Source: Isurus oxyrinchus (lineage: Eukaryota). From it: 64,000 nucleotides of DNA. The stretch is taken from the NCBI GenBank assembly GCA_026770705.1, contig JANJGN010000052.1, positions 124,001-188,000 on the forward strand, in the 5' to 3' direction. Both the position numbers and the translations under genes were made by a program. This document shows positions 10,381 through 43,004 of the stretch, in pieces (within the stretch, counting starts at the first letter, position 1; the number at the start of each line of letters is the position of its first letter). A model generated the notes under the pieces. That model made no database searches. It was not told the origin of the DNA and saw only the letters and a list, made by a program, of their open reading frames with translations.

Positions 10381-10409
10381 GTGAGTTACACAGAATTGAA
10401 CGTTCTCTT

Positions 10410-14287: not shown

Positions 14288-14404
14288 AAGAAAGATGAGA
14301 AGGATCTGGAAATGAAATCTAACCGCGGAGTCAATCCTGATACAGATGATGATCTTTACGCAAACTGTGATTTTGCCAAGGATTCTGTTTATGGGAATTT
14401 ATAA
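14288..14404 (+). other. Terminal cytoplasmic-tail exon KKDEKDLEMKSNRGVNPDTDDDLYANCDFAKDSVYGNL*
   Basis: Acceptor AG at 14286-14287, phase 0, open to TAA at 14402-14404. Paralogue of 2692-2808. Confidence 0.65.
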
Positions 14405-15439: not shown

Positions 15440-17345
15440 ATTGAATAGGAACAGGAGGAGGTCATTCAGCCCCCTCGAGCCTGCTACACAGGAACAAGAG
15501 AGCACCTGAAATAAAAACAGAAAATGCTGGAGAAACTGAGTAGGTCTGGCAGCATCTGTGCAGAATTAAAAAGAATAATCATTTCGAGTCCCTATGACCC
15601 TTTTTCAGAGTCTCAAAGCAAAAACTCTGTTTCTCTCTCCACAGCTGCTGCCAGACCTGCTGAGTTAATGCAGCATTTTCTGTTTTTATTTCAGATTTAC
15701 AGCATCTGCAGTATTTATTTTTAATGAGAGGAGGACATTCAGCACCTGAGCCTGTTACACAGGAACAGGAGAAGGCCCATCAGCCTCATGAGCCTATTAC
15801 ACAGGAACAGGAAGAGGCCATTCAGTCTCTCAACACCCTTCAACAGGAACAGGAGAGACTCTCAGCCCCTCGAGCCTGTTACACAGGAAAAGGAGGAGTC
15901 CTATTCAGCCCCATAGAGCCTGTAACACAGGAACAAGAGGAGGCCATTCAGTCACATTAGCCTGTTATCCAGGAACAGGAAGAGCACATTCATTCTCTCA
16001 ACCCTCTTACACAGGAATAGGAAACCCATTCAGCCCCTTGAGCCTGTTACACAGGAAAAGGAGGAGGCCCATTCAGCCCCCTTGAGCCTGTTTCACAGGA
16101 AGAGGAGGAGGCCCATTCTGTCCTCTTGAGCCTGTTACACAGGAACAGGAGACCCATTCAGCCTCCACAAACTTGTTACACAGGAACTTTAGGGGCTCCA
16201 TTCAGCCACTCAAGCCTGTTCCACATGAACGGGAACAAAAACAAAAATAGCTGGAAAAACTCAGCAGGTCTGACAGGATCTGCGGAGAGGAACACACTTG
16301 ACGTTTTGGGTCTGTATGACTCTTCATCAGAACTAAGGAAATCGAGAAATGAGGTGACGTTTTAGCTGGTAGAGGGGGTGGGACAGGTAGAGCTGGATTG
16401 TGGGCCAGTGATAGGTGGAGGTAAAGAAGAGGTTGCCAAAGATGTGATAGACAAAAGGACAAAGGGGTGTTGACGGTGGTGATATTATCTGAGGAATGTG
16501 CTAATGGGGACATTAAGGGTAGAAAGCAGGACGAGCAAGAGACAGATAGTCCTAGTGGGGGTGGGGTGGGGGAAAAGGATTGAAATAGGCTAAAAGGTAG
16601 AGATGCAACAACAGATGTAAAACATTTAAAAATAATGGAAATAGGTGGGAAAAGAAAAATATATAAATAAAAAAAAATATTAAAAATGATAAATTATTGG
16701 AAAAAGGGAGATTGGAAAGAGGGTGGGATGGAGGAGAGAGTTCATGATCTGAAATTGTTGAACTCAATATTCAGTCGGGAAGGCTGTAAAGTGCCTGGTC
16801 GGAAGATGAGGTGCTGTTCCTCCAGTTTGTGTTGGGCTTCACTGGAACAATGCAGCAGGCCAAGGACGGACATGTGGGCATGAGAGCAGGGTGGGGTGTT
16901 AAAATGGCAAGCGACAGGGAGGTCTGGGTCATGCTTGTGGACAGACCGAAGGTGTTCATCAGAGCGATCACCCAGTCTGTGTTTGGTCTGTCCCATGTAG
17001 AGGAGACCACATTGGGAGCAGTGAAGGCAGTAGATTAAATTGAGGAAAGTGCAAGTGAAATGCTGCTCCCAATGATGCTCCTAATGTTCTCGAGCCTGTT
17101 ACACAGGAACTGGGGAAGGCCAATTCAGCCCCTTTAGCCTTTTACACAGGAACAGGAGGAGGCCCACTCAGCCCCCTCAAGCCTGTTACACAGGAACAGG
17201 AGGAGGCCCACTCAGCCCCTCGAGCCTAGAACACAGGAACAGGAGGAGGCCCATTCAGCCCCCTCAAGCCTGTTACACAGGAACAGGAGGAGGCCCATTC
17301 AGCCCCATCAAGCCTGTTACACAGGAACAGGAGGAGGCCCATTCA
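15440..17345. repeat. 43-44-bp minisatellite interrupted by Penelope fragments
   Basis: Units at ~15440-15500, 15725-16230 and 17090-17345. Confidence 0.85.
16233..17068 (-). mobile_element. Penelope-like element 3' end (GIY-YIG endonuclease plus pseudo-LTR)
   Basis: Peptide MGQTKHRLGDRSDEHLRSV...LPVACHFN...EEQHLIFRPGTLQP. Confidence 0.85.
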
Positions 17346-17402
17346 GCCCAAGCAGAGCGTGTGGGCAGTTCCTCCCCAGGTGAGCAGTCAGACAGGTCCT
17401 GG
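17341..17402 (+). pseudogene. Gene A: 5'-truncated exon 1
   Basis: Only the 3' half of the conserved block is present, fused directly to minisatellite. Donor gtaagt at 17403. Confidence 0.7.
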
Positions 17403-18103
17403 GTAAGTAACGGATCGATTGGAAATCACGGGGGAAGTTCTGAGGGCTCCTAATACATTGTCCTGTCTTCTAAATCAGCACCTTAATACTGACCCTTCAA
17501 CAGTGCAGTACTCCCTCAGTACTGACCTTCCAACAGTGCAGCACTCCCTGATAAATGTCCCTCTGACAGTGCAGCACTCCCTCAGTACTGACCCTCCAAC
17601 AGTGGAGATCCCCCTCAGTACTGACCTTACAATAGTGCAACACTTGCTCAGTAATGACCATCCGACAGTGCAGCACTTGCTCAGTACTGACACTGGGGAG
17701 TTTCAGTCTACTCTGTGGGGCAGACGTCCCCTGAATGGGGTCTTGAATCCCACAATGTTCTGAGCCCCTGAATTTGGCTGTGAAACCCACTGACCCACAG
17801 GAGAAACTCCTGGTCAATGACTGTCCACCTCTGAGCAGAAATATCACCACAGGGTCAGGACACAAACGGTTAACAGTTCACCAAGATCTCAAAACATGAG
17901 CGTCTTGAGGTGGTGAAAGGTGCTATAGAAATGCAAATCCTTCAATGTTCTTCTTTCTTAAAGCCTTGTCACTCTCTGCAGAGCACCTATCATCCTACAG
18001 AGAATCAAATTAGTCTGTGAAGACATTGTCTAAAAGCAGTTCTGATCTCTCGAGAGCATTCGGACAAGAGGTGACGTCTCATTAACTCCTTTCTCTTTCA
18101 CAG

Positions 18104-18182
18104 CTTGAGAGTGAGAAGTGGATGGAATATCTGGGAGTGGACGATGATCGGGAAATCTACTTCCTCTTGTCACTTTCCCAAG
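18104..18182 (+). pseudogene. Gene A leader exon with 1-nt deletion
   Basis: From ATG 18144 to the donor at 18183 is 39 nt, versus 40 nt in genes B and C. Confidence 0.8.
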
Positions 18183-18884
18183 GTAATATCATCATCAGCT
18201 CAGACAGATTTATGTTTAACAGTCTTTGTAAAAGATCATTCTTATCTCTTAATCTCTGAAACCTCCTGCAACTCAACCAAACAACTTCCCAGATCTCTGT
18301 GTTACTGCAATTCTGGCCTCTTGACCATCCCCCGATTCCCATCACTCCAATACTGGCGGCCGGGCCTTCAGCTGCCTGGGGCCTGAGCTCTGGAATTCAC
18401 TCCCTAAACCTCGGGGATGGAGGAGATCAGAGGGTTTCATTTTACTGAGAATCACCACGACCACATCACAGCTGCAGTGAGAATAGACAGAGAGTCCAGC
18501 CCTCACTCTTCCTGCACAGTTTCACCTTAGCAACCACAATATGGAAATTTAAAAATACTGAAAGTTAAACCGAAGCCAAGCCAGTCAGTTTAGAGAGATG
18601 AGATGTTTACACAGTTTCTCTGTGTATCTTGTAGACACTGTGTTGGGTGGAAGACTGGCTTCACTAAACAGGGTCCTGAGGACCATGAGCCAATGTAGAA
18701 TGAACTTGTCCACTCCTGTGTCCAGGATTCTCTTCCATCCATTGTGAAACCTTGGGGAATTCCATGTGTGTCCTATAGATGGTCCACACTGCAGCCACTG
18801 TGCCCCAGTGATGGAGGGGGTGGATATCGAGTCTAGTGGATCTACAAACCTTCCAGAGTTAAATATTGACATTTCTCTCTCCAG

Positions 18885-19261
18885 TTGGACTGTCACAAGA
18901 GTGGAAAGGCGACACTCCACGAGAGGTGGCAGCGCAGGAAGGTTCCTGTGTACAGATTCCATGTCATTACAGTTAATCATCACATTTCGTAGGGAGATCA
19001 CGTGTCGGAATCTGGTTGAAAGGAATAGATGGGAACCCTACAGCCTAAATGGTCTATAGCCTTTCAGTCCGAGGGTCACAGTCACAGGGATCAAAGATTC
19101 CGCCATCGTACCCGGCTGTCTGGAGACCTGAAAGATGGCGACTGTTCCCTGATTATAAACAACATCAGACGGAAAGATGCAGGACCTTATTTTTTTCAGA
19201 ATAGAATTTGACAGCAGGAATAGGTAAAGCTACTATCCTGTAACCCGGCTTCACGTTTCTG
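18885..19261 (+). pseudogene. Gene A V-set Siglec exon V1 (inactivated)
   Basis: 377 nt. TAA at 18974-18976 and 19225-19227, plus frameshifts. Otherwise homologous to V2. Confidence 0.9.
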
Positions 19262-19732
19262 GTAAGTGCTGTGTTATAATTACTCAACAATTCACATTCA
19301 ACACTCAATGGGAGATAACACAAACTGTGACATTTACATATTAACACAAAACACAGCTTATTATAACACACTGTCTGATTCTCAATAACCTGGTGATAGC
19401 TTCCAGTTCAGTCCAAAAGCAACCTCCAATACTCACTTTAATATCAATGATTAAAAGCATTAACTGTATTATCAGGTTATCCACACCCATCAATCTCTCC
19501 TGTCCTGTTTAAAAGTCTGACGTATCGATAAAAGAAAGATGTGCATTTCTGCAGCGCAATTTACCACCTCAGGAGGATCCAAATCCATTCACAGCCAATG
19601 ACATTATTCCTGAATTGTAGTCACAGATGTAAAACACAGCAGGCAGTTTGTGCACAGCAAGATCCAACAAACCACAATGTAATAAATCACCCAGATCACT
19701 GAGGAAATGAGAAGCCAGTGAACTCAAACCTC

Positions 19733-19773
19733 TGGTCTGATGAAGAGTCATACGGACTCGAAACGTTAACCCT
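19733..19773 (+). ncRNA. Minimal type I hammerhead ribozyme motif in a Penelope pseudo-LTR fragment
   Basis: CTGATGA-A-GAGTC-atacg-GACTC-GAAAC-GTTA: catalytic boxes, a 5-bp helix II and palindromic AACGTT, followed by pLTR sequence. Confidence 0.6.
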
Positions 19774-20120
19774 GTCTTCCTCTCCACTGATACTGTCAGA
19801 CCTGCTGAGTCTTTCCAGCAATTTTTGTTTTGGTTTCAGATTTCCAGCATCCACAGTATTCTGCTTTTAACTCCAATCTCTGGTCTGAGCCTCTTCTCTC
19901 ATCCAGTGTTCTCAATTCACATGTCTCGGAGTGAACGTGTATTAAGCTGAGAGACAGAAACACTACTGCCAAAGAGCAAGAAAATCTTTCCTGATCATTG
20001 TAACCTCTCAGTTCTGATATCATCCTTGTAAAAGTGCTTTCTCTTGTGGGACTGTGGTTTCTATTTGAACTGATGCTTCACGTTATATTTCTCTAAAAGG
20101 ATCCATTCTCTGTCTGTTAG

Positions 20121-20417
20121 ATTTCACAGATAAACCCACGATATTCCCTGCTGAAATTATTGCAGGAAAGCGTGTGGATGTAAGCTGCACCTTCAACACA
20201 ACGTGCAATGGAACAGCAGCGCCTGTCTTAACCTGGGAAACTCCCACTGACGTACCTGGATCAGTCTCAAACACTGTAACTCAGCATGGTGTCACTCTGA
20301 CCTATACTTCTGTTCTGACCCTGATCCCATCACTCAAACACCACGGACACACTCTCAGCTGCAGAGTGAGATATCCATCTGTTTCATCGGAGCGGACCCT
20401 CGTACTAACTGTGCAAG
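20121..20417 (+). pseudogene. Gene A C2-set Ig exon (domain-2 type, open frame)
   Basis: 297 nt, AG/GT, phase 1-1. DFTDKPTIFPAEIIAGKRVDVSCTFNTTCNG...LSCRVRYP...LTVQ. Confidence 0.9.
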
Positions 20418-20740
20418 GTAAGTACATACACCTTTCATTCTACATCAGCACTCCCTCAGCGCTGACCCTCTGACAGTGCAGCCCGTTCTCAGTGTCCACA
20501 TTCTCAGACCTCTCTAAGTGCTTCACAGTCGATTGAAGTTAATTGATCTTTATTTGATTATTGCTGAATAAAGAGACAAGCTGTCTAAACTTTACATCTC
20601 GCACACACCATTCTCCATGGCAACACCTCCACCTATCAGAGACCACTTGCCAACCAATCAGCACTCTCTTCCCATTAAGTATAAATTGTGGTTCACTTTC
20701 TGTTGGTAATCCTGCGAACGGGCTTCTTGATTCCTGCCCT

Positions 20741-20893
20741 GACATCTTAATGTCCAAATGAACAGAACAAGTTCCAACAATGAGCTGTGGTTGGTGATTC
20801 CTCACGTTACATCCAGGGACACTGGAGACTATCAGTGTGTGGCAGAGAATGAACATGGAGCAGTGGAGGGGTTCATAACCATCACTGTGGAAC
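20741..20893 (+). pseudogene. Gene A: 3' half of the 282-nt Ig exon
   Basis: The 5' half and acceptor are replaced by an unrelated insert (~20570-20740). Donor intact. Confidence 0.85.
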
Positions 20894-22564
20894 GTGAGTG
20901 CACACAGACATCAACATCTCTCTCAGATTCAAACATTGCACAAACACACACAAATATACAGAACTAAATAGACACGTGCAGACACACATGTATGAGCAAT
21001 TACAAAGACACACTCACGAACAAACACACTAGCACACACTCCCCTGTGGCTTACCTGAGTACTGCACTGGAGAGTTGGCCTGGATTCTGGGATTTGTGTT
21101 CCCAATCATGTTTATGGAAGAATATGGAAATTACAAAGTCTATTACAGACACTCAGATGCATAGAGACACTCACAGATACTCTCTGCCTCTCCAACTCTC
21201 TCTCTCCCTTTAAGAAGCTTCCTGAAAGCTAACCCTTCGAACAATCACCGGCCCCAACTCCTCCTTATCTGATTCTGTGTGATTTTGTTTGTATATCTGA
21301 GAGTAAGAGAGAGGTGGAGAGGTTTAGTTAGAGAATTCCTGCTGGTGAAAATCTTACATCATTTACTCACCTTTCCAGTGCACATATTTCCCAGTATGTC
21401 CAATGCCCCTGTTTATAATGATGACTGCCTATGTAAACGTCACGCTGTAGTTACAGTCTCCCACCAGTGGTGGCATTGTAGCACTTAATCCTTGTGTTTC
21501 CCAGCTTTTCAAGCAACTCCACTTCCCAGTTTGCTACATAAGCTGTGAGTTCATCAGAATTAAATTATTACTCAAATGATAGATTTGATAATTCATTTTA
21601 TTGAAAACTTCCTCAGTGCCTCCCTGAAGGGTTTACACTCTCTGGGAAGCAGGAATAGGCTGGATGTTGGGGAGTTCATCTTTTCCCAGAGAGTAGGGAT
21701 CCTTGAGAATGTGCTGTCAGTGGGTGTGGTAGTTCCTGTTTCTCTGTCGCCTTCAAGAGGGATCTGGAGTGGTTATTGACTGGGGGAGAGATCATGGAAG
21801 CAGAGAATGATACAGCACAGGAGGAGGCCATTCAGCCCATTGAGGCTGTGCCAGGTCTTTCAATGTTCTATCCAATCAGATCCACTAACCACCACTCCAC
21901 TTTACCCCATCTTCCTCCTTCAAGTGTTTATCCAATTTCCCTTTTGAAAGTTCCTATTGAATCTGCTTCCACCGCCCTTTCAGGCAGCACCTTCCAGATC
22001 ACAACAACTCGCTCTGTCAAAACAAATTCTCCTCATCTCCCCCTCCAGTTGGTCAATCTGTGTCCCTCTGGTTACCGACCCTCCTGCCCCTTAAATACAT
22101 CGATACTGTTCACCTCAACCACTCCCTGTGGGAGTGAGTTCCACATTCTCCCCTCTCTCTGGGTAAAGATTGGAACTGTCTATTAAGCGGGGGGTGTAAG
22201 TCCGTGGGGGAGTCCATCTCGATTCTGCCCGATTTGCACACGCGTCCGAGATGGATTTCCACCCTGCACTAAACGTTTCCAGAATTTTCTACAGCACAAT
22301 CCTGTACACAGCGACGGAGAGAAACATTGGACAGAGAGTCCAACAGCACAATGATCCATTCTCACCAATGTTCCACGCTAAGGGGAAAGTTCCGATTGTC
22401 CACTCTTAGAGTGTTTACAATGAAAACATTCATTCCACATTGAATCCCAGTGGATGGGTCAATATTACAGCAAATGTTGCAGTGATATGAAGCTTGATTG
22501 TTCAGCCAGAGTGAGAGATTGAAAGCGGAGAGTCAGTGATGATTTCTTTCTGTGTGTTCTCTAG

Positions 22565-22704
22565 ACAGTGGAGGAGAGATTCTGCATGTGATCCTGATCC
22601 TGGGAATACGAGCTGTGATATTCCTTGTGGCTGTGGTTATCACTATCACTGGAGTCTGTGTCTGGGAGAGACAAACAGTGAAAGGAAGTCGACAGACTGT
22701 TTGA
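22565..22704 (+). pseudogene. Gene A terminal TM/short-tail exon SGGEILHVILILGIRAVIFLVAVVITITGVCVWERQTVKGSRQTV*
   Basis: Strong acceptor (tttctttctgtgtgttctctag), phase 1. Hydrophobic span with an internal Arg (CGA 22609-22611), TGA at 22702-22704, no Tyr. Confidence 0.75.
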
Positions 22705-22829
22705 AGCTTTGTAAAGCAACAATCTGGTCAGTCAGTGCGGACAAATAACGTGTGATGTTGTGTTAAGTTGTAATGAAACTGGTCAGTGTCCTGGTTAGAA
22801 TCACCTTCGTATCAGAGAGGCATTCCAGC

Positions 22830-23420
22830 ACAGTAGGAGACCATTCAGCCCATTAAGTCTATGCTGTCTCTGTGTAGAGCAATCCACTCAGTCCCATTCC
22901 CCCGCTCTATCCCCGTATCCCTGCAAGTTTATTTCCAAGTGTCCATCCAATTTCCTTTTGAAATCGTTCATCGTCTCCACTTCCACCATCCTCGTAGGCA
23001 GCGAGTTCCAGCTCATTACCACTCGCTGTGTAAAAAAGTTCCTCCTCACATCCCCCCACTGCCCACAACCTTCAATGTGTGTCCCCCAGTCCTTGTCCCA
23101 TCAGCTAATGGCAACAGCTTCTCTTTGTCTACCGTATCTAAACCCATCATCATCTTGTACACCTCGATCAGATCCCCCCTCAATCTCCTTTGCTCCAAGG
23201 AGAACAACCCCAGCTTCTCCAACCCAACCTTGTAGCTAAAATCCCTCATCCCTGGACCCATTCTGCTCAATCTCCTCCCCACCCTCTCAAGGACCCTCAC
23301 TTCCTTCCCAAAGTGAGGAGACCAGAACTGGACACAATACTCTAGCTGTGACCTAAACAGAGCTTTATAAATGTTCAGCATAACCTCCCTGTGTTTGTAC
23401 TCAATCCCTCCATTTATGAA
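22830..23420 (-). mobile_element. CR1 LINE 3' fragment
   Basis: Peptide YKALFRSQLEYCVQFWSP...LFSLEQRRLRGDLIEVYK. Confidence 0.9.
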
Positions 23421-25380
23421 AAGCTTATTCTTTCCATCAGCACAAACAGCAATTTCCAAGCGGACTCCCATCAGCAGACAGAGTGCAATGAAACATCGGC
23501 ATGCCTGCTTCTTAATGTACGGAGAGAAACCTGGAATGAGAGATTCTCCTTCTTCTCCTCAGCAAGCTGAAACTTTTCCTTATACCTGGTGCTCCCCAGT
23601 CCTGCTGTGTGGACACATCATAACCACGGCATTGTCTGGCTGTGTGCAGCCAACATGGTCGAATAGGAATGAACAGAAATGTGACATTGCTAAACTCTGT
23701 TCTCTGATTGGAATGAGCTTTCTGAATGCTGCACCTTTTTCATGCTTCGATAGATTGTAAGAAGCATTTGGGTTATGAATAAAATTACATTGATTAACAC
23801 AAGTGATTAAAATGTTCAGCCTTTTCTGTAGATACTTATGGATTAAAATTCTTATTTTGCTGCCAGATTCTTGGCTCAAAGACATTATTTCATGTTGTCA
23901 CTTTTTCCAGTCAGATGAATTCCTGTGGCCATCTTTATAATGGAAATTTTCAATGTAAACACGTCACATTGCAGCTGCACACTCCTGCCAGTGGTGGTGC
24001 CATTCCAAAACTGTCTTGCTGCACCAACACAGTGAGAATTATTCTCGACATGTACATGATGTTGTTGTTACACAGACATCAGGCGGAATCTTGGGCTGTG
24101 CCTAGAATGCACTTAGGACATTGCAGACCACGCACAGAACTGACAGTGCAGCGTTTCCTCAATCCTGACCCTCGGTCAGTGCAGCGCTCCCTCATTACTG
24201 TCCCTCTGACAGTGCTGCACTACCTCATTATTGACCCTTTTCAAGTGCAGCACCCTGTCAGCACTGACCTTCTGACAGTGCAGCACACCCTCATGGCTGA
24301 CAATCTGACAGTGCAGCAATCCCTCAGTACTCATCCAACCACAGTGCAGCACTCCCTCAGTACTGATCCTCTGACACTGTATCCCTCCCTCACTACTGAC
24401 CTTCCGACAGTTCAGCACTCCCACGGTACACACCTTCTGACAGTGCAGCACTCCCTCAGTACAGACTCTCTGACAGTGCAGCACTCCCTCAGTACTCACC
24501 CTCCCACAGCGCAGCCCTCTCTCAGTACTCACCCTCCCACAGTGCAGCACTCCCTCAGTACTCACCCTCCCACGGTGCTGTTCGAGTTGATTCAATCAAG
24601 ACTGGTGCCCAAAGAGGGAGGTTTCAATGCTAAATCATTGAATCGGTGAAAATTATTTTTAGGCTTACGGGAACAAGACTTAGTTCCTCAAATCCTTTCT
24701 TTTGCAATAACACACAGTACAAGAATTCTGTTTAAATAAATTCCAGTTAAACTTTGCCATGAAAGGATATCTTCTCACACTCGGCTCTACCTCAGTACTA
24801 ACCCTCCCACAGTCCGGCACCCCCTCAATACTGACCCTCTGACTGTGCGGAACTCACTCAATACAGACCCGCCGACAGTTCAGCACTCCCACATTACTGA
24901 CCCTCTGACAGTGCAGCACTCCCTCAGTACTGAACCTCTGACCGTGCAGCACTCCCTCATTACTGACCCTCTGACAGTGCAGCACTCCCACATTACTGAC
25001 CCTCTGACAGTACAGCACTCCCTCATTACTGACCCTCTGACAGTGCAGCACTCTCCCATTACTGACCCTCTGATAGTGCAGCACTCCCACATTACTGACC
25101 CTCCCACAGTGCAGCACTCCCACAGTAGAGTCCCGCTGACAGTGCAGCACTCCCTCCGTAATGATAACAGGGGTCGTTGAAATGTATCATACGGCCCGAG
25201 ACCTGTATTGGGGACTCTATCGCCTGAGTTTCAGCCTCTGTGGTGAGGGGGAGGAGTCTAATCCCACGGAGCCAATGGAGAAGCTTCATGACTACAGCTG
25301 CCCAAATATGAGCTGACAGATCACACATGGTAAACGTTTTGCTGAGAGCACAAAACATCCTCGATCTTCTCACTGATTAC

Positions 25381-25522
25381 CCACTTCCTCATTTTGTCTC
25401 ACAGTGACACATCCACCCTTTCTAATTAAACACACAGAGGGAGCAGCACAGGAAGAGGTCATTCAGCCCAAGCAGAGCGTGTGGGCAGTTCCTCCCCAGG
25501 CGAGCAGTCGGACAGGTCCTGG
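25381..25522 (+). promoter_or_regulatory. Gene B promoter/non-coding exon 1
   Basis: Conserved block with a PU-box (rc AAAATGAGGAAGTG, 25382-25395), ATTAAA, and donor gtaagt at 25523. TSS unknown; ctcacag at 25404 could alternatively be an acceptor. Confidence 0.65.
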
Positions 25523-25971
25523 GTAAGTAACGGAACGATTGGAATTCACTTCCACGACCAACACCGTCCTTTGTTGATGTTGTGACTTTATAAAGACAGA
25601 TTCCAATGATTGATGCCTTTGAAAGATTTCTACTGGTTATTGAGATCTGGGTGTGAGACTCAAGTCTGTTGTACAGAACATCTTTCTAGCTCAAGGGATG
25701 AGGGAAGTGCAGAGACATGAGCTTTGGGACGTCTTGAGGTGGTGAAAGGTGCTATAGAAATGCAAATCCTTTAATGTTTTTCTTTCTTAAAGCCTTGTAA
25801 CTCTCTGCAGAGCACCTATCATCCCACAGAGAATCAATTAGTCTGTAAAGACATTGTCCAAAAACAGTTCTGATCTCTTGAGAGCTGTCGGACAAGAGGT
25901 GAGGTCTCACTAACTCCTTTCTCTTTCAGAGTTTGAGAGTCAGAAGCTTATGAAATATTTGGGAGTGGACA

Positions 25972-26011
25972 ATGATCGGGAAATCCTACTTCCTCCTGTC
26001 ACTTCTCGAAG
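25972..26011 (+). CDS. Gene B leader exon MIGKSYFLLSLLE(V)
   Basis: 40 nt, phase-1 donor gtaata. Completed by VGLSQ in the V exon. Confidence 0.8.
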
Positions 26012-31090: not shown

Positions 31091-31311
31091 ACAAACAGGG
31101 TCCTGAGGACCATGAGCCAATGTAGCATGAATATTTCCGCTTTTGTGTCCAGGATTCTCTTCTATCCATTGTGAAACACTGGGGAGATCCCTGTGTGTCC
31201 TGTAGATGGTCCACACTGCAGCCACTCTGACCCCGTGAAGGAGGGGGTGGATATCGAGTCTAGTAGATCTACAAACCATCCAGAGTTAAATATTGATATT
31301 TCTCTCCCCAG

Positions 31312-31689
31312 TTGGACTGTCACAAGAGTGGAAAGGTGAAACTCCACGACAGGTGATAGCGCAGGAAGGTTCGTGTGTCCAGATTCCATGTAACTACAGT
31401 TATCCAGCACGTGTAGTAGGGAGAGCACGTGTCGGAATCTGGTACGTGAAATGGTACACATGGAATACAAGGTCTAGAGGGACTATAGCTTTTCACTCCA
31501 AGGATCACAATCGCGAGTTAACACGGTTCCGCAATAGGACACGGCTGTCTGGAGACCTGAAAGATGGCGACTGTTCCCTGATTATAAACAACATCAGACG
31601 GGAAGATGCACATTATTATTATTTCAGAATAGAATTTGACAGCAGCAATAGTTACAGCTACTATCCTGCAACCCAGCTTCACGTTTCTG
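31312..31689 (+). CDS. Gene B first V-set sialic-acid-binding-type domain (V2)
   Basis: 378 nt, phase 1-1. Siglec hallmarks: N-terminal Trp (EWKG), GSCVQIPC, DCSL, no F-strand Cys, essential Arg in YYFRIE, G-strand YSY. Confidence 0.92.
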
Positions 31690-31899
31690 GTAAGTGCTGT
31701 GTTATAATTACTCAACAATTCACATCCAACACTCAATGGGAAATAATAGTGTTTGATTTGCTTGTTTTTTGGCCGTGTTAACCAGCTTCACTATTTTTAA
31801 TGATTTGTCTATTTCTGCTCCCAGATCCATGAGCTTATTGTGTGTGATTGAATCCACATCATAGCTGTAACGTAAACCGAGCTGAGGGATGATGACACT

Positions 31900-33590
31900 T
31901 CCCCCCTGAGTGAAGTGTCTCCTCCCCACTACACCTTCCACCCCTCACACTGTCCGTGCAAACCCCCGTCCCATCTCCAGCCTCTCGTTCCCCTCCAAAG
32001 TCCTTGAACGTGTTTCCATTTCCCGAATCCATTCCCATCTTTCCCGGAACTCCATGTTTGAATCCCTCCAATCAGGTTCCCACCCCAGCCACTGTGCTGA
32101 AACAGCTCTTATCAAGGTCACAAATGGCATCCTGTGTGACTGTGACAAAGGTCAACTTTCCCTCCTCGTCCTTCTCGATCTGTCTGCAGCCTTTGACACG
32201 CTCGACCACACCATCCTCCTCCAACCCCTCTCCACTGTGGTCCAGCTGGGTGGGACTGCTCTCCCCTGGCTCCATTCTTATCCATCTCATCGTAGCCAGA
32301 GAATCACTTGCAATGGCTTTGCAGCATCATCTGAACAGTGTTACTTTTCACCTGTCCACTGAGGATCCCCAGCTCTACCTCACCACCACCTCTCTCGACT
32401 CCTCCACTGCTGCTAAATTATCAAGCTGCTTATCCGACATCCAGTACTGGATGGGCAGAAATTCCCTCCAATTAAATATTGGAAAGACTGAGGCCATTGT
32501 CTTCATTCCCCGCTCCAAACTCTGTTCCCTCGCTACCAACTCCATTCCACTCCCTGGCAGCTCTCTGAGATTGAAGCCAATCTGTTCACAGCTTTGTTGT
32601 CCCATTTGATCCTGAGATGAGCTTCCGGCCTCATATCTGCACCCTCACTAACACCGTCTATTTCCACCTGCGTAACATCGCACGACGTCACCCTGTCTCA
32701 GCTCATCTGCTGCTGAAACCCTCATCCACACCTTCATTACCTCCAGACTCGACTGTTCCAACACACGCTCTACACTCCATAAACTTGAGGCCATCCAAAA
32801 CTGCTGACCACATCCTTACTCACACCAAGTCCCGTTCCCTTATCACCCACTCTGCTCGATGACCGAGACTGGCTCCTGGTCAAGCAAAGTCTCAATGTCC
32901 AAATTTACATCTTTGTTTCCGCACTATCCCTGTAATCTCCTCATCCTCCTACAGTACCTACAACACTCCCTATCTCTGTAACCTCTTCAATTGTCTACAA
33001 CCATCCCTATCTCTGTAACCTCTTCAAGCTCCTATCACTTCCCTATAGCTGTAAATTCATCCTGCCCAACAAACCTACCAATCTCTGCAACCTCCTCCAG
33101 CCACTACAACTCTCCCTATTTCTGTAACTTCCTCCTGCCCCTAAAAGCTTCCCTATCTCTGTAGCCTGCTCCAGTCACTACAACCTTCCTTCTCTCTGTA
33201 ACCTCCTCCAGCCCCTACATCCCTCACAATCTCTGTAACCTCCACCAGCCCCTCCAACCCTCTGATGTCTCTGCACTCCTCCAATTCCAGCCTCTTGACC
33301 ATCCCCCGGTCCCATCACTCCAACATCAGCGTCCATGCCTTCAGCTGCCTGGGGCCCGAGCTCTGTAATACCCTCCCTCAACCCCTCTCCATCCCTCTCT
33401 CTCACTCTCTCTATCTCTCTCTCTCTCTCTCTTTGTCTCTTTCTCTCTGTCTCTCCATAACACCGAACTCTTCTGGTCAGCTGTTCCTAATATCTCCACA
33501 TGTGTCTGGGTGACATACTTTGTTTTATGACGCTCCTGTGTAGCACCTTGGGGTGATTTGTCATGTTCAAGTTGTTGTGTAAATATAAGT
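31900..33590 (+). mobile_element. L2-clade LINE RT/3' fragment with internal ~37-bp tandem repeats
   Basis: Peptides RPISSLSFPSKVLER, ETALIKVTN, SLLVLLDLSAAFDTLDH and LQLNIGKTE. Confidence 0.9.
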
Positions 33591-34965: not shown

Positions 34966-35025
34966 TATCGGTTTCAGTGGATCCACAAACCATCCAGAGT
35001 TAAATATTGAGATTTCTCTCCCCAG

Positions 35026-35394
35026 ATGAACCCTCACAAGAGTGGAAAGGTGACATTCCACGAGAGGTGACAGCGCAGGAAGGTTCGTGTGTACAGATTC
35101 CATGTCATTACAGTTATCCATCGTGTCTGGAAAACCAACCGCGAGGTGGAGTCTGGTTTAATAATGAGAAACAGATTCCCTGGGCTCCCATTGCCTTTCA
35201 CTCCAAGGATCACAGTCACGAGTTACCACGGTTCCGCCATCGGACTCGGCTGTCTGGAGACCTGAAAGATGGCGACTGTTCCCTGATTATAAACAACATC
35301 AGATGGGAAGATGCAGGACCTTATTTTTTCAAGATAGAATTTGACAATGGTCCGAGCCATAACTATTACCCTGTAACCCAGCTTTACGTTTCTG
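35026..35394 (+). CDS. Gene B second V-set domain (V3), essential Arg replaced by Lys
   Basis: 369 nt, phase 1-1, open. Begins DEPSQEWKG. YFFKIE (AAG 35331-35333) and an extra Cys (TGT 35124-35126). Confidence 0.88.
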
Positions 35395-36207
35395 GTAAGT
35401 GCTGTGTTATAATTACTCAACAATTCACATTCAACACTCAATGGGAAATAACACAAACTGTGACGTTTACATATTAACACAAAACACAGCTTATTATAAC
35501 ACACTGTCTGATTCTCAATAACCTGGTGATAGCTTCCAGTTCAGTCCTAAAGCAACCTCTAATACTCACTTTAATATCAATGATTAAATGTATTGACTGT
35601 GTCCATCAATGTTATCAGGATATCCACTCCCATCGATCTCCGTAACCCTGTTTGACAGTCTTACATATCGACAAAAGAAAGATTCGCATTTCTATAGCAC
35701 CTTTCAACATCTCTGTACGTCACAAATGGATTCACAACCAATGAAATAATTCTTGAAATGTAGCCCTTGTTGTAATATGGGAAACACAGCAGCCAATTTA
35801 TTCACAGCAAGCTCCCAGAAACAGCTATGTGATCAATAACCTGATCATCTGCTTTTGATGCCGGTTCAGTGATTGGTTCAAATGGATTCTCTCCTGCTGG
35901 GGACAGGATAGAATTTAAATCTGGCAGATTTCGGAGAAAGTAACAAGCCAGTGTGCCAGGAACTGTGAGCTGCTCCCCCACCCTCACCTGGGATTGTCAA
36001 TTCAATTGTCTCAAAGTGGAAATGAATTCATCTGAGTGACAGAAACTCCACTAAGTCTGAAAATAGGAAATTCTCTCCTGATCGTTGTAACCTCTCAGTT
36101 CTGATATCATCCTTGTAAAAGTGCTTTCTCTTGTGGGACTGTGATTTCTATTTGAACTGATGCTTCACATTATATTTCTCTAAAAGGATCCATTCTCTGT
36201 CTGTTAG

Positions 36208-36504
36208 ATTTCACAGATAAACCCACGATATTCCCTGCTGAAATTATTGCAGGAAAGCGTGTGGATGTAAGCTGCACCTTCAACACAACGTGCAATGGAA
36301 CAGCAGCACCTGTCTTAACCTGGGACACTCCCACTGACGTGCCTGGATCAGTCTCAAACACTGTAACTCAGCATGGTGTCACTCTGACCTATACTTCTGT
36401 TCTGACCCTGATCCCATCACTCAAACACCACGGACACACTCTCAGCTGCAGAGTGAGATATCCATCTGTTTCATCGGAGCGGACCCTCGTACTAACTGTA
36501 CAAT
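36208..36504 (+). CDS. Gene B C2-set Ig domain
   Basis: 297 nt, AG/GT, phase 1-1, open. CTFNTTC carries the Siglec inter-domain Cys. Confidence 0.9.
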
Positions 36505-36701
36505 GTAAGTATGGACACCCTTCATTCTATATTAGCGGTATTAGGATATAATGTGCTGGGCAAGATCCCACAAACTTCACTGGGTTGAAGACAAAACTGG
36601 TCCTTTTTTAATGAGTGATATTGAGCAGGGAGAGCTCTTCCTTGTATTGACCCTTGGGATTGTTTATCCCAACCTGATAGGGCAGAGGGGGCCCAGGTTG
36701 T

Positions 36702-36768
36702 GACTATCAGTGTGTGGCAGAGAATGAACATGGAGCAGTGGAGGGGTTCATAACCATCACTGTGGAAT
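36702..36768 (+). pseudogene. Gene B: 3' remnant of the 282-nt Ig exon (probably skipped)
   Basis: Only [22 protein letters not shown] and the donor remain. No pyrimidine tract. Confidence 0.8.
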
Positions 36769-36809
36769 GTGAGTGTGGAGATACATTTGTTTGTTTGTTG
36801 TCTCCGTGG

Positions 36810-37098
36810 TCTCCGTGGAGCCGTTGGGATCGTGTTGTTTTTAATCCAGTTTTCTTCAATCCTCGCTCAGTCCACGTTATCCACACATCCAATTTTTCCT
36901 CTCCCTTTCTGTTTTTGCTCTCAGTTTCTCCTTCAATGGTTGTGAGGACAAGGCTGTCAGGTCTTCGTTTCCAATCTCCGTACTTGACGACCTTTCTCTC
37001 TCTAACTGTCCTGAACAACCCTTTTAATTGCTGAACATCTCCTCTTGATCTAAGCCACTCATTGGTCTTTCTGTCCATCCAGCTGATTCTGAGCATCT
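36810..37098 (-). mobile_element. RTE-clade LINE 3' fragment
   Basis: Peptide MLRISWMDRKTNEW...IEG..KNRKG. Confidence 0.6.
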
Positions 37099-38150
37099 GG
37101 CAGCATCTGTGGAGAGAAAGACAGGGTTAGTGTTTGGAGTCTGTATGACTCCTCTTCAGAGCTAAAGGGAAGTAGACATGTGGTGAAATATATCCTGTCT
37201 AAGGGGGGGCGATGGGACAGGTGGAGCTGGATAGAAAACCAGCGATAGGTGGAGGCAATGGAGAGATTGTGGAAGATGTCATAAACAAAAGGTCAAAGGG
37301 TTGTTAACAGTGGTGGTATTGGATAAAGGAGGTGCTAATGGTGACATTAAGCAGAGTGTGATAATGGGCGGACCAGGGTAAGCACTCTGGAAAGAGACAG
37401 ATGGCCCTCGTTGGGGTGTGGCAGGGGGAGGGGACGGTGGAGGGAATAAAGATTGAAAATAGACTAAAATCTGTGGATAAAACAATCAATAAAAATGGAA
37501 ATGAATTTCAAATAATAATAATAAAAATAAGGGGAAAACAGTTAACAAAAAATACAATTAAAATGAATACATAAAAAAGGGTTCAAAAAGCAGTGAAGAT
37601 CGAGGAGAGAGTTCATGATCTGAAATTGTTGAACTCAATATTCAGTCGGGAAGGCTGTAAAGTGCCAGGTCGGAAGATGAGGTGTTGTTCCTCCAGTTTG
37701 TGTTGGGCTTCACTGGAACAATGCAGCAGGCCAAGGACGGACATGTGGGCATGAGAGCAGGGTGGGGTGTTAAAATGGCAAGCGACAGGGAGGTCTGGGT
37801 CATGCTTGTGGACAGACCGAAGGTGTTCATCAGAGCGAACACCCAGTCTGCGTTTGGTCTGTCCCATGTAGAGGAGACCACATTGGGAGCAGTGAATGCA
37901 GTAGATTAAATTGAAGGAAGTGTACATGAAGCGCTGCTTCACCTGGAAGGAGTGTTTGGGTCATTGGACAGTGAGGGGGGAGGAAGTAAAGGGGCAGGTG
38001 TTGCACCTTCTGTAAATGCATGGGAAGATGTCATCGGAGAGGGTTGAGGTGCTAGGGGTGATGGAGGAGTGGACCAGGGTGTCCTGGAGGGAATGATCCC
38101 TGTGGAATGCCAACGGGGTGGGAGTGAAGGAAAGATGCTTTTGATGGTGG
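37095..38150 (-). mobile_element. Penelope-like element 3' end
   Basis: GIY-YIG-type peptide NLIYCIHCSQCGLLYMGQTKRRL. Confidence 0.85.
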
Positions 38151-38154
38151 TCAC

Positions 38155-39045
38155 ATTTTGTCCGAAGGAGGTGAGAAATGAGGGAGGGAATTCCAGAGGT
38201 TAGGATCCAGGCAGCTGAAGGCACGGCTGCCAATGGTGGAGCGATAGGAATCGGGGGAAGGTCAAGAGGCTGGAATTGGAGGTGCACAGAGATCTCAGAG
38301 GGTTGTAGAGGCTGGAGGAGTTTACAGAGATAAGGAAGGTTGTAGGGGCTGGAGGAGGTTACAGAGATAGGGAGGGGTGTAGGGGCTGGAGGAGGTTACA
38401 GAGATAGGGAGTGTTGTAGGGGCTGGATGAGGTTACAGAGATAGTGAGGGTTGAAGGGTCTGGAGGAGGTTACAGAGATAGGGAGGGTTGTAGAGGCTGG
38501 AGGAGTTTACAGAGATAGGGAGGGTTGTGGGGGCTGGAGGAGGTTACAGAGTTAGGGAGGGTTGTGGGGGCTGGAGGAGGTTACAGAGGTAGAGAGGGTT
38601 GTGGGGGCTGGAGGAGGTTACATAGATAGGGAGGGGTGTAGGGATGGAAGGTGGTTGCGGAGTTAGCGAGTTTTATATGGGCTGTAGGAGGTTACAGGGA
38701 TAGGGACGGTTGTGGGGGTTGGAGGAGGTTACAGAGATAGGGAGGGTTATAGGTGCTGAAGGAGGTAACAGAGATAGGGAGGGTTATAGGGGCTGGAGGA
38801 GGTAACAGAGATAGGGAGGGGGTAAGGAGGGATTTGAAACGATGTGAATTTTAAAATTGTGGCATTGTCGGACCGGGAGCCAGTGTAGCTCAGTGACCAA
38901 CAGGGAGTGATGTGTGAGTTAGGACATGGGGACAGCAGAGTTTAGGATGAGCTGATGTTTATGGAGAGTGAAAGATGGGAGGTCGGGCAGGAGAGTGTTG
39001 GGATAGTTGAGTGCAGAGGTAACAAAGGCAGGAATGAGTGTTTCA
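38155..39045 (-). mobile_element. L2 3' fragment with 37-bp minisatellite (38300-38820)
   Basis: GGGAGGGTTGTAGGGGCTGGAGGAGGTTACAGAGATA repeated ~14 times. Reverse of the repeat at ~32925-33260. Confidence 0.75.
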
Positions 39046-39114
39046 GTGTGAAGATTCTATCTTACGCTCTAACTTTGCTATGACGTTGTCTCATTGTTGT
39101 CCTTCCCTCCTCAG

Positions 39115-39408
39115 ATAAGCCGGAGATTTCCCAGCAGTCGGAGTGCACTCGGAGATCAGAGGGGGTCACCTGCGTCTGTGTGGCCACCTCCAACCCACCG
39201 GGAGACCTCACCTGGCACCTGCCCAGTGCCAACATCAGTGGTAACCAAACACACGGAGATTTTGTGTCGTGGCAGGTCAGAGATGGGCATCTGGTGACTG
39301 GTTCCCTCACTCTGATGAGACCCCAGGATGAGGGGGGAGTGATTGCATCCTGCTCGGTTCAAAACCCACACGGGGAAGCCATGTTCAAGGTGTATCTGTG
39401 GGTCAAAG
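39115..39408 (+). CDS. Gene B membrane-proximal Ig domain (MAG domain-5-like)
   Basis: 294 nt, phase 1-1. YKPEISQQSECTRRSEGVTCVCVATSNPPGDLTW...SLTL...CSVQNPHG. The S-x-C...CxC..SNP pattern is typical of the last Ig domain of MAG/Siglecs. Confidence 0.88.
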
Positions 39409-40436
39409 GTGAGAGACTCGCTCAGGTTCGATCTCCACTCAGCTGGATTGATCCCTAAACTCGAGAATTCCCTCCCTCAACCTCTCCACCTCTCTCTCTA
39501 CCTCCTCTAAGATGCTGTGTACAACTTACCCCTTTGACCAAGCTTTGAATCACCTGACCTCATGTGACAATGGCAACACTTGGTCAAATTGGAGCCAGGC
39601 CGTTCAGGGGGTGATGTCAGGAAGCACTTCTTCACACAAAGGGGAGTGGAAGTCTGGAACCCTCTCCCCCAGATAAGCTGCTTCATTGGGTGCAAGACAG
39701 AAAGCTTTGACAAAATGTCCTTTCTCAGCAATACTCAGGTTCTCCTCCCAAACGACTAAATATTATATATAAACATTACATAGATTACATCGAGAAACAT
39801 TATATATAAATATTACATAGATTACATCGAGAAAAATTATATATAAATGTTACATATATTACATTGCTAAATATTATACATTAATGTTATAGGGATCACA
39901 TTGATAAATATAAATAAATGTTAAATTGATTACATCGAAATGCAAGACTCGATAACCAATGAAGCAGTTTCGAAGTGAGCTCACTGTTGTCATGTAGGAA
40001 ACGCAACAGTTGATTTGTACACAGCAAGATCCCACAAACAACAGCGTGCAATTGAGGTGATAATTGATTATTTTAGTGAGGTTATTTGATACATATATAT
40101 ATAGAAATTACATATATAATGTGGGTCACTAATGACCCTTAAGGGAGGGAAACCTGTCCATTTTAACAGGTCTGGGTGTATAAGTGACTCCAGTCTCAGA
40201 CACCAGCATGGTTAACTCTTACCTGCCCTCTGAACTGGTCTCCCAGTTTGGGACAAACCAGTGGTTCAGGAGGAAGACCCCCCACCACCATCTCAAGGGG
40301 AAACTAGGGATGGACAATAAATGTCAGCATTGCCCGAGAATGAGTATTTAAACACTGAGTGAGTGTATCGCTTCTCGAGATACATCGGAGCATCATTGTA
40401 AACCTGTAGTGCAGTAATTAATGACTGTTTTTACAG

Positions 40437-40533
40437 GTAGAGACTCCAGTAAATGGACAGTAGGATTGTTCACGGCTGGGATCATGTTGAGTGTTTTCCT
40501 GGCTGGAATCTTCATCTTCATCTGTGTGAGAAA
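40437..40533 (+). CDS. Gene B transmembrane exon GRDSSKWTVGLFTAGIMLSVFLAGIFIFICVRK
   Basis: ttttacag acceptor and gtaagt donor, 97 nt, phase 1 to phase 2. Uncharged hydrophobic span. Confidence 0.88.
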
Positions 40534-40679
40534 GTAAGTCTGAAGATTTAACTTGATTTTAATATAAACATTTGTTGAGGACTAATTGGACAGTTTTTAC
40601 AAAGGGCCAGCACAGGCACGATGGGCTGAGTGGCTTCCTCCTGAGCTGTGAGATTTTAAATTCTTTAATCAAATGTGAC

Positions 40680-41120
40680 TGTCACTGGTGAGGCCGTTAT
40701 TAAATTGCCCATCCCTAATTGCCCCTTGAGAAGGTGGTGGTGAGCTGCCTTCTTGACCCGCTGCAGTCCATGTGGTGTAGGTACACCCACAGTGCTGTTA
40801 GAGAGGGAGTTCCAGGATTTTGACCCAGCGACAGTGAAGGAACGGTGATATATTTCCAAGTCAGGATGGTGAGTGACTTGGAGGGGAACTTCCAGGTGGT
40901 GGTGTTCCCATGTGTCTGCTGCCCTTGTCCTTCTAGATGGTAGAGGTCGTGGGTTTGGAAGGTGCTGTTGAAGGAGCCTTGCTGAGTTGCTGCAGTGCAT
41001 CTTGTAGATGTTACACACACTGCTGCCACTGTGTGTTCATGGTGGAGGGAGTGAATGTTTAATGTGGTGGATGGGGTGTAGATCAATCGGGCTGCTTTGT
41101 CCTGGATGGTGTCAAGCTTC
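40680..41120 (-). mobile_element. CR1-clade LINE 3' fragment
   Basis: Peptide KKLDTIQDKAARLI...HSLHH. Same family as the copies at 10410 and 44560. Confidence 0.75.
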
Positions 41121-41256
41121 TTGATTCTGTGCTTTGTGCAGATGTGATTTAAAGAGACAGTCCCAGTCATTGGTGTAAGTTACAGTGGGCTCTGTGTCTG
41201 TGCTGCACTGACTCTCTGCTATATGATAACCACAGTGTGATATTGTGTTATTGCAG

Positions 41257-41338
41257 GAGAAAGACAGCGATGGAGGAGAGAGTTTCAGGGACCAGTGACA
41301 TTGTATTGACTCCCAGTCCACTCTCTGTGAAGCACCAG
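41257..41338 (+). CDS. Gene B cytoplasmic exon 1 (RKTAMEERVSGTSDIVLTPSPLSVKHQ)
   Basis: ttgcag acceptor and cag|gtacag donor, 82 nt, phase 2 to phase 0. Bridges the TM and terminal exons in frame. Confidence 0.72.
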
Positions 41339-41473
41339 GTACAGGAGCTGTTTACACTCACTCCAAAGCTTCAATCTCAGTGTGTAGACAACACATGTCC
41401 CAGATTCCCAGCCCAGTTACCCACTGATTTGTACCTGTGGAGTCAGCAATGGTTCAGTATCATGCTGTCTCTC

Positions 41474-42225
41474 TGTTATGACACAGCAACTGGTAAAGGC
41501 TGTTGTTTAAAATCCGAGAGGAAACTTTAAACAACTGTCATAACCTATATTTCCCAGTGGAATGTTTGAGATGCAGCTCTAAATTCAGGAATAAGAGCAC
41601 CAGTTCTCGACATCGGTGTTATATCAAACTACATGAGACATTTATTAATTTACACAAGTTAAACATATGCACATGGCTACAAGCGAGTATTATCATAACT
41701 TTTTAACAAATTCCCAAACTAACCTCCTCTAAGACAACCCATAGACTTTAAGCAGACACCAGGCAAAGCATTTTCACCTCACAAATTCCAAATGAGGTTC
41801 CTTTCACTTTGGTTCCTTTGCAGACAGGTGAAGGCTTACAGCTGCTTTGATGTTACAAGCCTCTGCTCTGCACACACAAAACTGCTCAAGTTATACCCAG
41901 TGCTTCTCTTTGAATGTAAATTCTCATTGTATCATCAGGACCTTTGAACTCCATCTCTTCTAACAATAAATCCTCTGTCATAGTATCAATTTTATCAACA
42001 AAATAAATGTTGATTGGTTTAAGATTTCACTCTCAGGCTTTGAATACTCTGTTTAAAAATACAAATTTTTATCTCTCAGTTTACATCTCAACACTACTAT
42101 ACATCAAATACCCAGACTGGCTGGCTTTAATCCAATTAAAACACACACAGACACACCCACAGACTAAACCTCTTCTTAAATAGACAATTTCCAATTACAA
42201 TACATACATTAAAAGATTCATAACA
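41474..42225. mobile_element. Solo-LTR-like element
   Basis: Termini TGTTATGA...TCATAACA (8-bp inverted). A related copy at ~47004-47820 is inserted within a CR1. Confidence 0.65.
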
Positions 42226-42242
42226 CTCTGTCTCTGTCCCTT

Positions 42243-42274
<32 letters not shown>

Positions 42275-42755
42275 ATCCTCTCTGATTACAAGATTCATGT
42301 TATTGAGCCTCAGACCAGGCACCTGAGTGCAGAAACCAAGCCGTCACTCACCAGAGCCATTACCGAGGGAGTGCGGGACTGACAGTGGGTCAGCACTGAG
42401 GGAGTGCCGCACTGTCGGAGGGTCAGTACTGAGGGAGTGCTGCATTGTCGGAGGGTCAGTACTGAGGGAGTGCTGCACTGACAGAGGGTCAGTACTGAGG
42501 GAGTGCCGCACTGTCGGAGGGTCAGTACTGAGGGAGTGCTGCACTGTCGGAGGGTCAGTACTGAGGAAGTACTGCACTATCAGAGGGTCAGTACTGAGGG
42601 AGCACTGCACTGCCATAGGTGGTTTCTTTCAGATGACATGAGGGAGGATTAAACCCACTGAGCCACGACTGACACTAACGACGCTGCACAATAATTTAAC
42701 CCTATCAGTGCCAGTAAATGATGTGAGGATGTCTTCTGTTTCCATTTCTCTGTAG

Positions 42756-43004
42756 GGTAAACAGAACGTGCTGATTACTGAGCCCCGGAACACAACCAGA
42801 GATACAACTAGCGAGGGGGAGACCCCAGCTCCCCGGGGACTTTCTGAATGTGCAGTGGGAGGTGATGCTGGACATGGGAACCCTGACAATCCCGCGGACT
42901 TTCTCTACGCCAATCCCCAAGTCTTCAGGGTGCCCAGTGGTGATGGGTCTGTCCACAGGGAAGAGGAGACGGAATACGCACAGATCAGATTCAAGCGAAA
43001 CTGA
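42756..43004 (+). CDS. Gene B terminal cytoplasmic exon with FLYANP and TEYAQI motifs
   Basis: tttctctgtag acceptor, phase 0, TGA ending at 43004. The distal TEYAQI resembles the TEYSEI/AEYAEI motifs of CD33-related Siglecs and MAG. Confidence 0.88.
   Translation, partial: GKQNVLITEPRNTTRDTTSEGETPAPRGLSECAVGGDAGHGNPDNPADFLYANPQVFRVPSGDGSVHREEETEYAQIRFKRN

Follow-up and report, generated by a model that had tools for sequence, protein, structure and literature searches.

A probably decayed activating-type gene beside an intact TEYAQI-type gene in a tandem cluster of Siglec-type receptor genes of the shark Isurus oxyrinchus

In a stretch of 64,000 nucleotides (nt) from the shark Isurus oxyrinchus (assembly GCA_026770705.1, contig JANJGN010000052.1, positions 124,001 to 188,000 of the forward strand; hereafter the window, numbered from its first letter), two adjacent genes, A and B, have the exon make-up of Siglec-type immunoglobulin (Ig) receptors and end in opposite signalling modules. 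We propose, with a probability of roughly 0.7, that gene A is a decayed activating-type gene and gene B an intact TEYAQI-type gene, and that the two are members of a large elasmobranch Siglec-type family that would have been assembled from exchangeable exon cassettes. The initial annotation had presented them as paired activating and inhibitory receptors side by side. The opposite ends indeed adjoin, with a transmembrane (TM) segment carrying an Arg and a short tail at 22565-22704 and an uncharged TM segment with a TEYAQI tail at 40437-43004, but the V-set (V) exon of gene A is dead and gene B has lost its consensus immunoreceptor tyrosine-based inhibitory motif (ITIM). The locus is an ordinary birth-and-death product rather than a working pair. 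Throughout, exons were searched one at a time, and frames were judged from exon lengths and phases rather than from a joined protein.

The V exon of gene A is a pseudoexon. Translated in the usual phase from the splice acceptor onward, it runs into an in-frame TAA at codon 30 (18974-18976, after ...IPCHYS), and a second TAA follows at 19225-19227, where the great white shark protein P0223 has a Tyr (FDSRNRYSYYP). Inside the YFFR motif, the poly-T run at 19190-19196 counts seven T against six in all paralogues, and the exon as a whole measures 377 nt, not a multiple of three, the in-frame Ig exons here being 378, 369, 297 and 294 nt long. We considered whether these lesions could be an artefact of alignment and ruled this out, as the acceptor itself sets the frame in which the codon-30 TAA is read, and a length of 377 nt amounts to a frameshift on its own. 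The leader exon has suffered a 1-base-pair (bp) deletion that frameshifts the canonical MIGKS start, so that the MIGKSYFLLSLLQ frame is lost; phase 1 is regained from an ATG further upstream (MEYLGVDDDREIYFLLSLSQ), with an acidic N-region as the result. No substitute V exon was found upstream within 1-18800. With a pseudoexon in place of its one V exon and a frameshift at the usual start, the gene A locus as assembled cannot make a V-bearing activating receptor and would represent a decayed copy, possibly still transcribed. The pseudoexon is also apparently a mosaic: over 18863-19718, its flanks are collinear with the C2-adjacent V exon, at the V2 position, of a third gene of the window, gene C (54437-55066), and its interior, including the C-C' loop and the G strand, is of the V1 type when compared with 31093-31746, as might be expected if unequal crossing-over or conversion had fused two V exons.

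Further downstream, the C2 and TM exons of gene A (437 nt) are free of lesions. The description of a single exon for TM and short tail, with an intramembrane Arg and no Tyr, was borne out: the basic residue lies in the span ILHVILILGIRAVIFLVAVVITITGVCVW, which is followed by the short Tyr-free tail ERQTVKGSRQTV and a stop. The exon is preceded by a ...tctag acceptor and reads (D)SGGEILHVILILGIRAVIFLVAVVITITGVCVWERQTVKGSRQTV to its stop codon; the last base of the C2 exon and the first two bases of the terminal exon make up the Asp, yielding ...LVLTVQ-D-SGGEILHV..., as in annotated catshark proteins. The C-terminal end of a Scyliorhinus torazame protein aligns with it at an expectation (E) of 1.4e-14, so the exon is not a chance open reading frame. 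This Arg-bearing exon, TM(Arg), is present as a single copy, no others having been found in the window by blastn and relaxed tblastn. In receptors of the gene A type, the buried Arg would pair with a membrane Asp of a DAP12- or FcR-gamma-type adaptor carrying an immunoreceptor tyrosine-based activation motif (ITAM).

Gene B, by contrast with gene A, is intact. Its eight exons are all open, with compatible phases and GT/AG borders, from a start at 25972 to the end of the tail, and they include two V exons, of which the first has its nearest relative, in the V tree described below, in V1 of Cetorhinus P0003. The membrane-proximal Ig domain is also found in P0001, P0009 and P0016. In V2 the codon for the strand-F residue is AAG (Lys), versus AGA or AGG (Arg) in paralogues, and the exon starts DEPSQEWKG versus VGLSQEWKG elsewhere, while the great white TM(Arg) protein P0166 starts MEAEPSQEWKG, at the beginning of a V2-type domain and without a signal peptide. 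The uncharged TM segment and the long tail were as first described: the last exon ends in ...DFLYANPQVFRVPSGDGSVHREEETEYAQIRFKRN (...TEYAQIRFKRN; also ...EEETEYAQIRFKRN) before its stop, with TEYAQI at 42969-42986 resembling an ITIM or an immunoreceptor tyrosine-based switch motif. Closer to the membrane, FLYANP represents a degenerate ITIM that fails at -2 and +3 and now resembles a YxN site, where relatives read LLYASINF, a consensus ITIM. Both tail motifs are kept in the relatives P0003, P0016 and P0017, and gene B retains TEYAQI alone. By analogy with the distal TEYSEI/V of CD33-related Siglecs, TEYAQI would recruit SH2 phosphatases and dampen signalling. An inhibitory role for gene B is thus a reasonable inference, and it stays at that strength because the consensus ITIM is lost and TEYAQI alone remains.

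What the two genes share almost exactly is the C2 exon. As originally noted, the copies in A (20121-20417) and B (36208-36504) are near-identical, with 5 base differences in 297 (98.3% identity) and one residue changed (E/D); a third copy, in gene C (55238-55534), differs from these by 3-4 bases, and the exon forms an island of 98-99% identity whose flanks drop to ~60-89% within 200 nt on each side. The gene A copy was most likely kept like its neighbours' by gene conversion. The V pseudoexon of gene A is only 83% identical in nucleotides to V1 of gene B (31312-31689) and about 79-81% to V2 (35026-35394), so A and B are near-identical in the C2 exon alone, and gene C shares that exon as well. 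It follows that the proposed common V subtype applies in a loose sense, to V1 and to a pseudoexon, that the ligand-binding domains of A and B are not near-identical, and that the suggested homogenisation of the SIGLEC5/14 kind extends to a C2 exon common to all cluster members but not to the V domain. Neither are both partners complete receptors, with two stops and a frameshift in the V exon of gene A and an intact gene B. V2 of gene B shares 91-93% identity with the V domains of the three great white Arg-type proteins and 87% with that of the best TEYAQI-type protein; pairing thus probably exists at the level of the shark family, via a V2-C2 unit that is found on Arg-type and TEYAQI-type genes elsewhere.

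The state of gene A was also viewed through assembled contigs of four runs (three that derive from a single sample of organism A, and one of organism B), aligned on 17300-23000 at a likeness of at least 92%. All four runs, and hence both organisms, contain a joint from C2 to TM(Arg) with GT..AG borders, 20415 to 22563 (equally 20417 to 22565), which skips the half exon lying in between, and three runs contain a joint from V to C2, 19260 to 20120. A probable transcript that joins Ig exons to the TM(Arg) exon, on which the initial annotation depended, was thereby recovered, possibly from a paralogue. The joints cannot be assigned to the gene A locus, because the 3' ends of the C2 and V exons hardly differ among the paralogues and the likeness cut is 92%; they suggest that the activating-type design is expressed in these sharks rather than that the gene A locus itself is.

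Several of these observations nevertheless weigh against gene A as a decayed copy or loosen the argument for it. That the contigs are RNA is a guess, for which the exact splice borders argue, and at this likeness spliced contigs may stem from paralogues or orthologues. Both 6-T and 7-T forms of the run at 19190 occur among them, and the part of the depth without the extra T could reflect an intact allele, an orthologue or the mapping of a paralogue. The upstream ATG keeps a usable frame in the leader, and a V-less model from leader to C2, the NCBI isoform P0230 of the great white shark, means that gene A could yet make a V-less chain. We therefore weighed two alternatives. On the first, A and B form a functional activating/inhibitory pair, and the lesions of gene A reflect misassembly or are specific to a single haplotype. 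The exact GT..AG borders of both joints, the contigs without the extra T and the complete leader-V-C2-TM(Arg) proteins P0155 and P0156 (272-273 residues) of Scyliorhinus canicula, intact and of the same design, are in its favour, but it has to accommodate at least four independent lesions of the V exon, two of them substitutions to TAA that homopolymer errors do not explain, in a window whose other Ig exons are all clean, and V domains just 79-83% alike, unlike those of known pairs (PMC4042635). We consider it unlikely. On the second, gene A is expressed without a V domain, as leader, C2 and TM(Arg), the dead V exon being skipped; the chain, which would not bind sialic acid, could still occupy an ITAM adaptor or regulate it. 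With the upstream ATG as the start, its leader, C2 and TM exons all fit in phase 1, the latter two are free of lesions, and P0230 offers a precedent; however, no leader-to-C2 joint is present among the joints listed (48 further joints stand outside this list), the N-region of the signal peptide would be acidic, and 437 nt without a lesion are equally explained by gene conversion and recent decay. A V-less chain of this kind strikes us as quite improbable, and decay of gene A, with or without residual transcription, remains our preferred reading.

The Arg cassette reaches well beyond this locus. Conservation of the Arg among paralogues, a further expectation of the initial annotation, is complete in the sense that ILGIRA is invariant in 11 annotated proteins of six shark species and three orders, where it is joined to Ig exons. 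Carriers are P0164, P0165 and P0166 in Carcharodon carcharias, the great white shark; P0155 and P0156 in S. canicula; P0006 and P0080 in S. torazame; P0020, P0157, P0158 and P0160 in Chiloscyllium punctatum; and P0159 in Hemiscyllium ocellatum. The window cassette matches that of great white P0164 in 42/45 residues. As the cassette is also C-terminal in the CD22-like P0159 and the sialoadhesin-like P0160, it is a mobile module, and its distribution would place its origin no later than the divergence of the three shark orders. In the great white models P0164 and P0165 the start Met lies within a partial V1, without a signal peptide; together with P0166 and P0230, these models hint at frequent 5' decay, or incomplete annotation, of activating genes in lamniform sharks.

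Siglecs are recognised by an extra Cys before strand B, by V-domain Cys residues on strands B and E and by an extra Cys in domain 2, and their strand-F Arg (YFFR.E) contacts the sialic-acid carboxylate. Against solved structures, the window V domain scores best with Siglec-5, Siglec-7, MAG, Siglec-8, CD33, Siglec-10 and sialoadhesin (E 4.5e-14 to 1.4e-11, the first five on the order of 1e-14 to 1e-12), the structures of CD22 and Siglec-15 scoring far more weakly. The Cys pattern EGSCVQIPC...DGDCSL aligns with EGLCVLVPC...KKNCSL of Siglec-5, as does the Arg of YFFR.E, and domain 2 carries its extra Cys (SCTFNTTCNG), so that, as far as the sequence goes, the Siglec pattern appears to be in place. 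Gene C has the strand-F Arg in each of its two V domains, and gene B has it in V1; in V2 of gene B it is replaced by Lys, and in gene A the extra T breaks the exon at this point. Proteins of the great white shark are nearest to the window genes, and a whole-library HMMER search with V2 of gene B returned 237 proteins below E 1e-10, the best of them shark and ray NCBI models named Siglec-8, -10, -12, -13, -14, CD33-like or MAG-like. Taken together, these data support the assignment of the window genes as Siglec-type genes of a shark. They could, in principle, form another Ig-superfamily adhesion or receptor family that resembles Siglecs, in which case the tails would be uninformative on sialic-acid sensing. 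In keeping with this, V2 of gene B has Lys for Arg, the relatives P0080 (HFSIEF) and P0020 (YYFKVEF) have Ser and Lys, respectively, and sialic-acid binding is putative; however, Siglecs account for every one of the best structural-sequence matches, V1 of gene B and the two V domains of gene C combine the Arg with the diagnostic Cys pattern, and the automated NCBI names agree, all of which leaves such a family very improbable.

In a FastTree analysis of 224 V domains, in which the columns are few (126) and the deep nodes weak, the window V domains fall inside a 30-row shark clade (support 99). This clade is nested in one of 47 elasmobranch rows (support 96), where proteins of the Arg, ITIM and YxN types are intermingled, and the amniote CD33-related V domains lie apart. 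The tree gives no support to strict orthology with the CD33-related group, and the sister relations of the elasmobranch clade carry values of 21-75. Because the elasmobranch clade is separate from the amniote CD33-related one and mixes tail types within itself, the data favour an elasmobranch pairing that would be lineage-specific and independent of the primate pairs. The original suggestion of an independently evolved or very ancient system is thus answered in part: the separate V clade favours the former, and the Arg cassette would date back at least to the three-order split.

Table. Exons of genes A and B and exon copies of the tandem cluster, by window position.
Feature	Position	Strand	Remarks
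Gene A leader exon	18144-18183	+	1-bp deletion relative to the leaders at 25972 and 48911
Gene A V-set exon, pseudoexon	18885-19261	+	stops, length; splice borders fit the joint 19260 to 20120
Gene A C2-set exon (domain 2), intact	20121-20417	+	297 nt; 292/297 bases as in the gene B copy
Gene A second C2/I-set exon, remnant of its 3' half	20741-20907	+	skipped in the observed C2-to-TM joint
Gene A terminal exon	22565-22704	+	TM with buried Arg (ILILGIRAVIFLV), 13-residue tail, TGA stop
Gene B leader exon	25972-26011	+	MIGKSYFLLSLLE, phase 1
Gene B V1 exon, intact	31312-31689	+	canonical Arg kept (YYYFRIEFD)
Gene B V2 exon, intact	35026-35394	+	Lys for Arg (YFFKIEFD)
Gene B C2-set exon (domain 2)	36208-36504	+	297 nt
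C2/I-set exon remnant in gene B intron	36702-36774	+	73 nt
Gene B membrane-proximal Ig exon	39115-39408	+	KPEISQQSECTRR...YLWVK
Gene B TM exon	40437-40533	+	span uncharged (WTVGLFTAGIMLSVFLAGIFIFICV); exon reads RDSSKWTVGLFTAGIMLSVFLAGIFIFICVR
Gene B cytoplasmic exon	41257-41338	+	RKTAMEERVSGTSDIVLTPSPLSVKHQ
Gene B terminal exon	42756-43004	+	compared with the tails of P0151, P0003 and P0016
V exons (five)	18885, 31312, 35026, ~52464, ~54498	+	
C2 exons, near-identical (three)	20121, 36208, 55238	+	
C2/I-set exons of the second type	10104, 56317, 57344, 58429, 59421	+	remnants at 20741 and 36702

Genes A and B belong to a tandem cluster of Siglec-type Ig genes, all on the + strand, with 33-bp satellite arrays and retroelement debris between them; the window holds members of this family and repeats, and nothing else. 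In Pfam searches the V exons register as V-set (E 1e-11) and Ig_CD22; the match for the C2 exons is C2-set_2. Gene C (48911-59696) comprises a leader, two V exons with the Arg in both, a C2 exon and four tandem C2/I-set exons that are 97-98% identical to one another, an N gap following three of them but not the copy at 59421; its 3' end lies past the window edge or inside N gaps. V2 of gene C shares 98.4% identity with the V domain of the great white TM(Arg) protein P0164. A third class of tail, at 2692-2805 and 14288-14401, ends in ...DDLYANC(D/E)FA(K/E)DSVYGNL and a stop, with two YxN motifs at ITAM-like spacing (YxN-x7-YxN), and is C-terminal in P0007, P0025, P0027, P0040, P0168 and others as well. 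It terminates an upstream gene fragment made up of a C2/I-set exon at 10104, a TM exon (11655-11744), a cytoplasmic exon (12503-12583) and the YxN tail, for which a leader and a V exon were not found within the window. Copies of ~100 nt of a YxN-type cytoplasmic exon (RGSSTGRGHSAQAERVGSSSPGEQSDR), 91-93% identical to the working copy at 12509-12610, lie at 17327-17429, 25448-25549, 48403-48504 and from 4772 onward, ~0.5-0.8 kb 5' of each leader, so that the duplication unit seems to begin within the tail of the preceding gene; position 17341, where the initial annotation began its feature, is inside one of them. The satellite arrays (~4900-8600, 17476-17901, 24140-25165, 42346-42620 in inverted orientation, and 55650-56190) are found both between and within genes and yield long spurious open reading frames (LSTDPPTVQHS...), and retroelement pieces resembling C-terminal parts of reverse transcriptase occupy intergenic or intronic positions at 23046-23471 (- strand) and 31910-32609 (+ strand).

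Human SIGLEC5/14 and SIGLEC11/16 are adjacent genes in which an ITIM-type tail is set against a short tail with a basic TM residue that couples to DAP12. The shark locus resembles them in its adjacent genes, their opposite ends and the homogenisation of part of the ectodomain; it differs in that the homogenised part is the C2 exon alone and not V, in that the activating V exon is dead, and in its shark-specific membrane cassette, borne on CD22-like and sialoadhesin-like proteins as well. The human SIGLEC5/14 genes are homogenised by conversion over the V and first C2 domains, and in human pairs the activating partner is often lost, as in the SIGLEC14-null state (PMC4042635). With CD33-related Siglecs such as CD33 and Siglec-7, the shark family shares the V-set and C2 layout, the Cys pattern, the Arg of YFFR.E and a two-motif tail (LLYASINF...TEYAQIRF in shark relatives, LHYASLSF...TEYSEIRTQ in Tupaia CD33), whereas its V domain is equally similar to MAG and forms no clade with the amniote CD33-related V domains, and the proximal ITIM of gene B is lost. 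A teleost survey found fish genomes to be without CD33-related Siglecs and does not mention sharks (PMC7226832). Gene B recalls human Siglec-XII (SIGLEC12) in its two tandem V-set domains and the change of the essential Arg in one of them, and several shark relatives are indeed named 'Siglec 12' by NCBI, but shark relatives have up to four V domains (P0002), and the V duplication is common to shark orders and unrelated to the primate one. The NITR, LITR and DICP families of bony fish, which are not of Siglec type, form tandem birth-and-death clusters with charged-TM short-tail forms beside ITIM forms and many pseudogenes; the shark cluster has their architecture, with a Siglec-like ectodomain and a shark host. 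NCBI automatic annotation already gives these genes Siglec- or CD33-like names. We found no paper on this family in a literature search on Siglecs of sharks and cartilaginous fish, paired Siglecs and shark DAP12, which subscription journals lay outside, and the family is apparently unpublished.

Paired Siglecs are thought to have arisen as pathogens exploited sialic-acid-binding inhibitory receptors, and we know of proven cases in primates only. On the basis of V identities of 91-98% between window genes of the TEYAQI type or with tails out of view and great white proteins of the Arg type, we tentatively suggest, at somewhat less than even odds, that elasmobranchs have a fast-evolving Siglec system in which TM-Arg, ITIM/TEYAQI and YxN-x7-YxN tails are shuffled onto a near-identical V2-C2 unit and activating copies decay repeatedly, in the manner of human SIGLEC14 and SIGLEC16, amounting to a convergent paired system in three long-diverged shark orders. 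If true, such a system would contradict the view, published for teleosts, that fish are without CD33-type Siglecs. To it, the present locus adds one intact two-V gene of the inhibitory type and one decayed gene of the activating type, and as an instance of a working pair it is not the strongest. If the family does show a common ectodomain, opposite ends and frequent loss of activating copies, the same arms race would recur deep in vertebrate history, and the shark family would provide glycobiologists with a non-mammalian test system.

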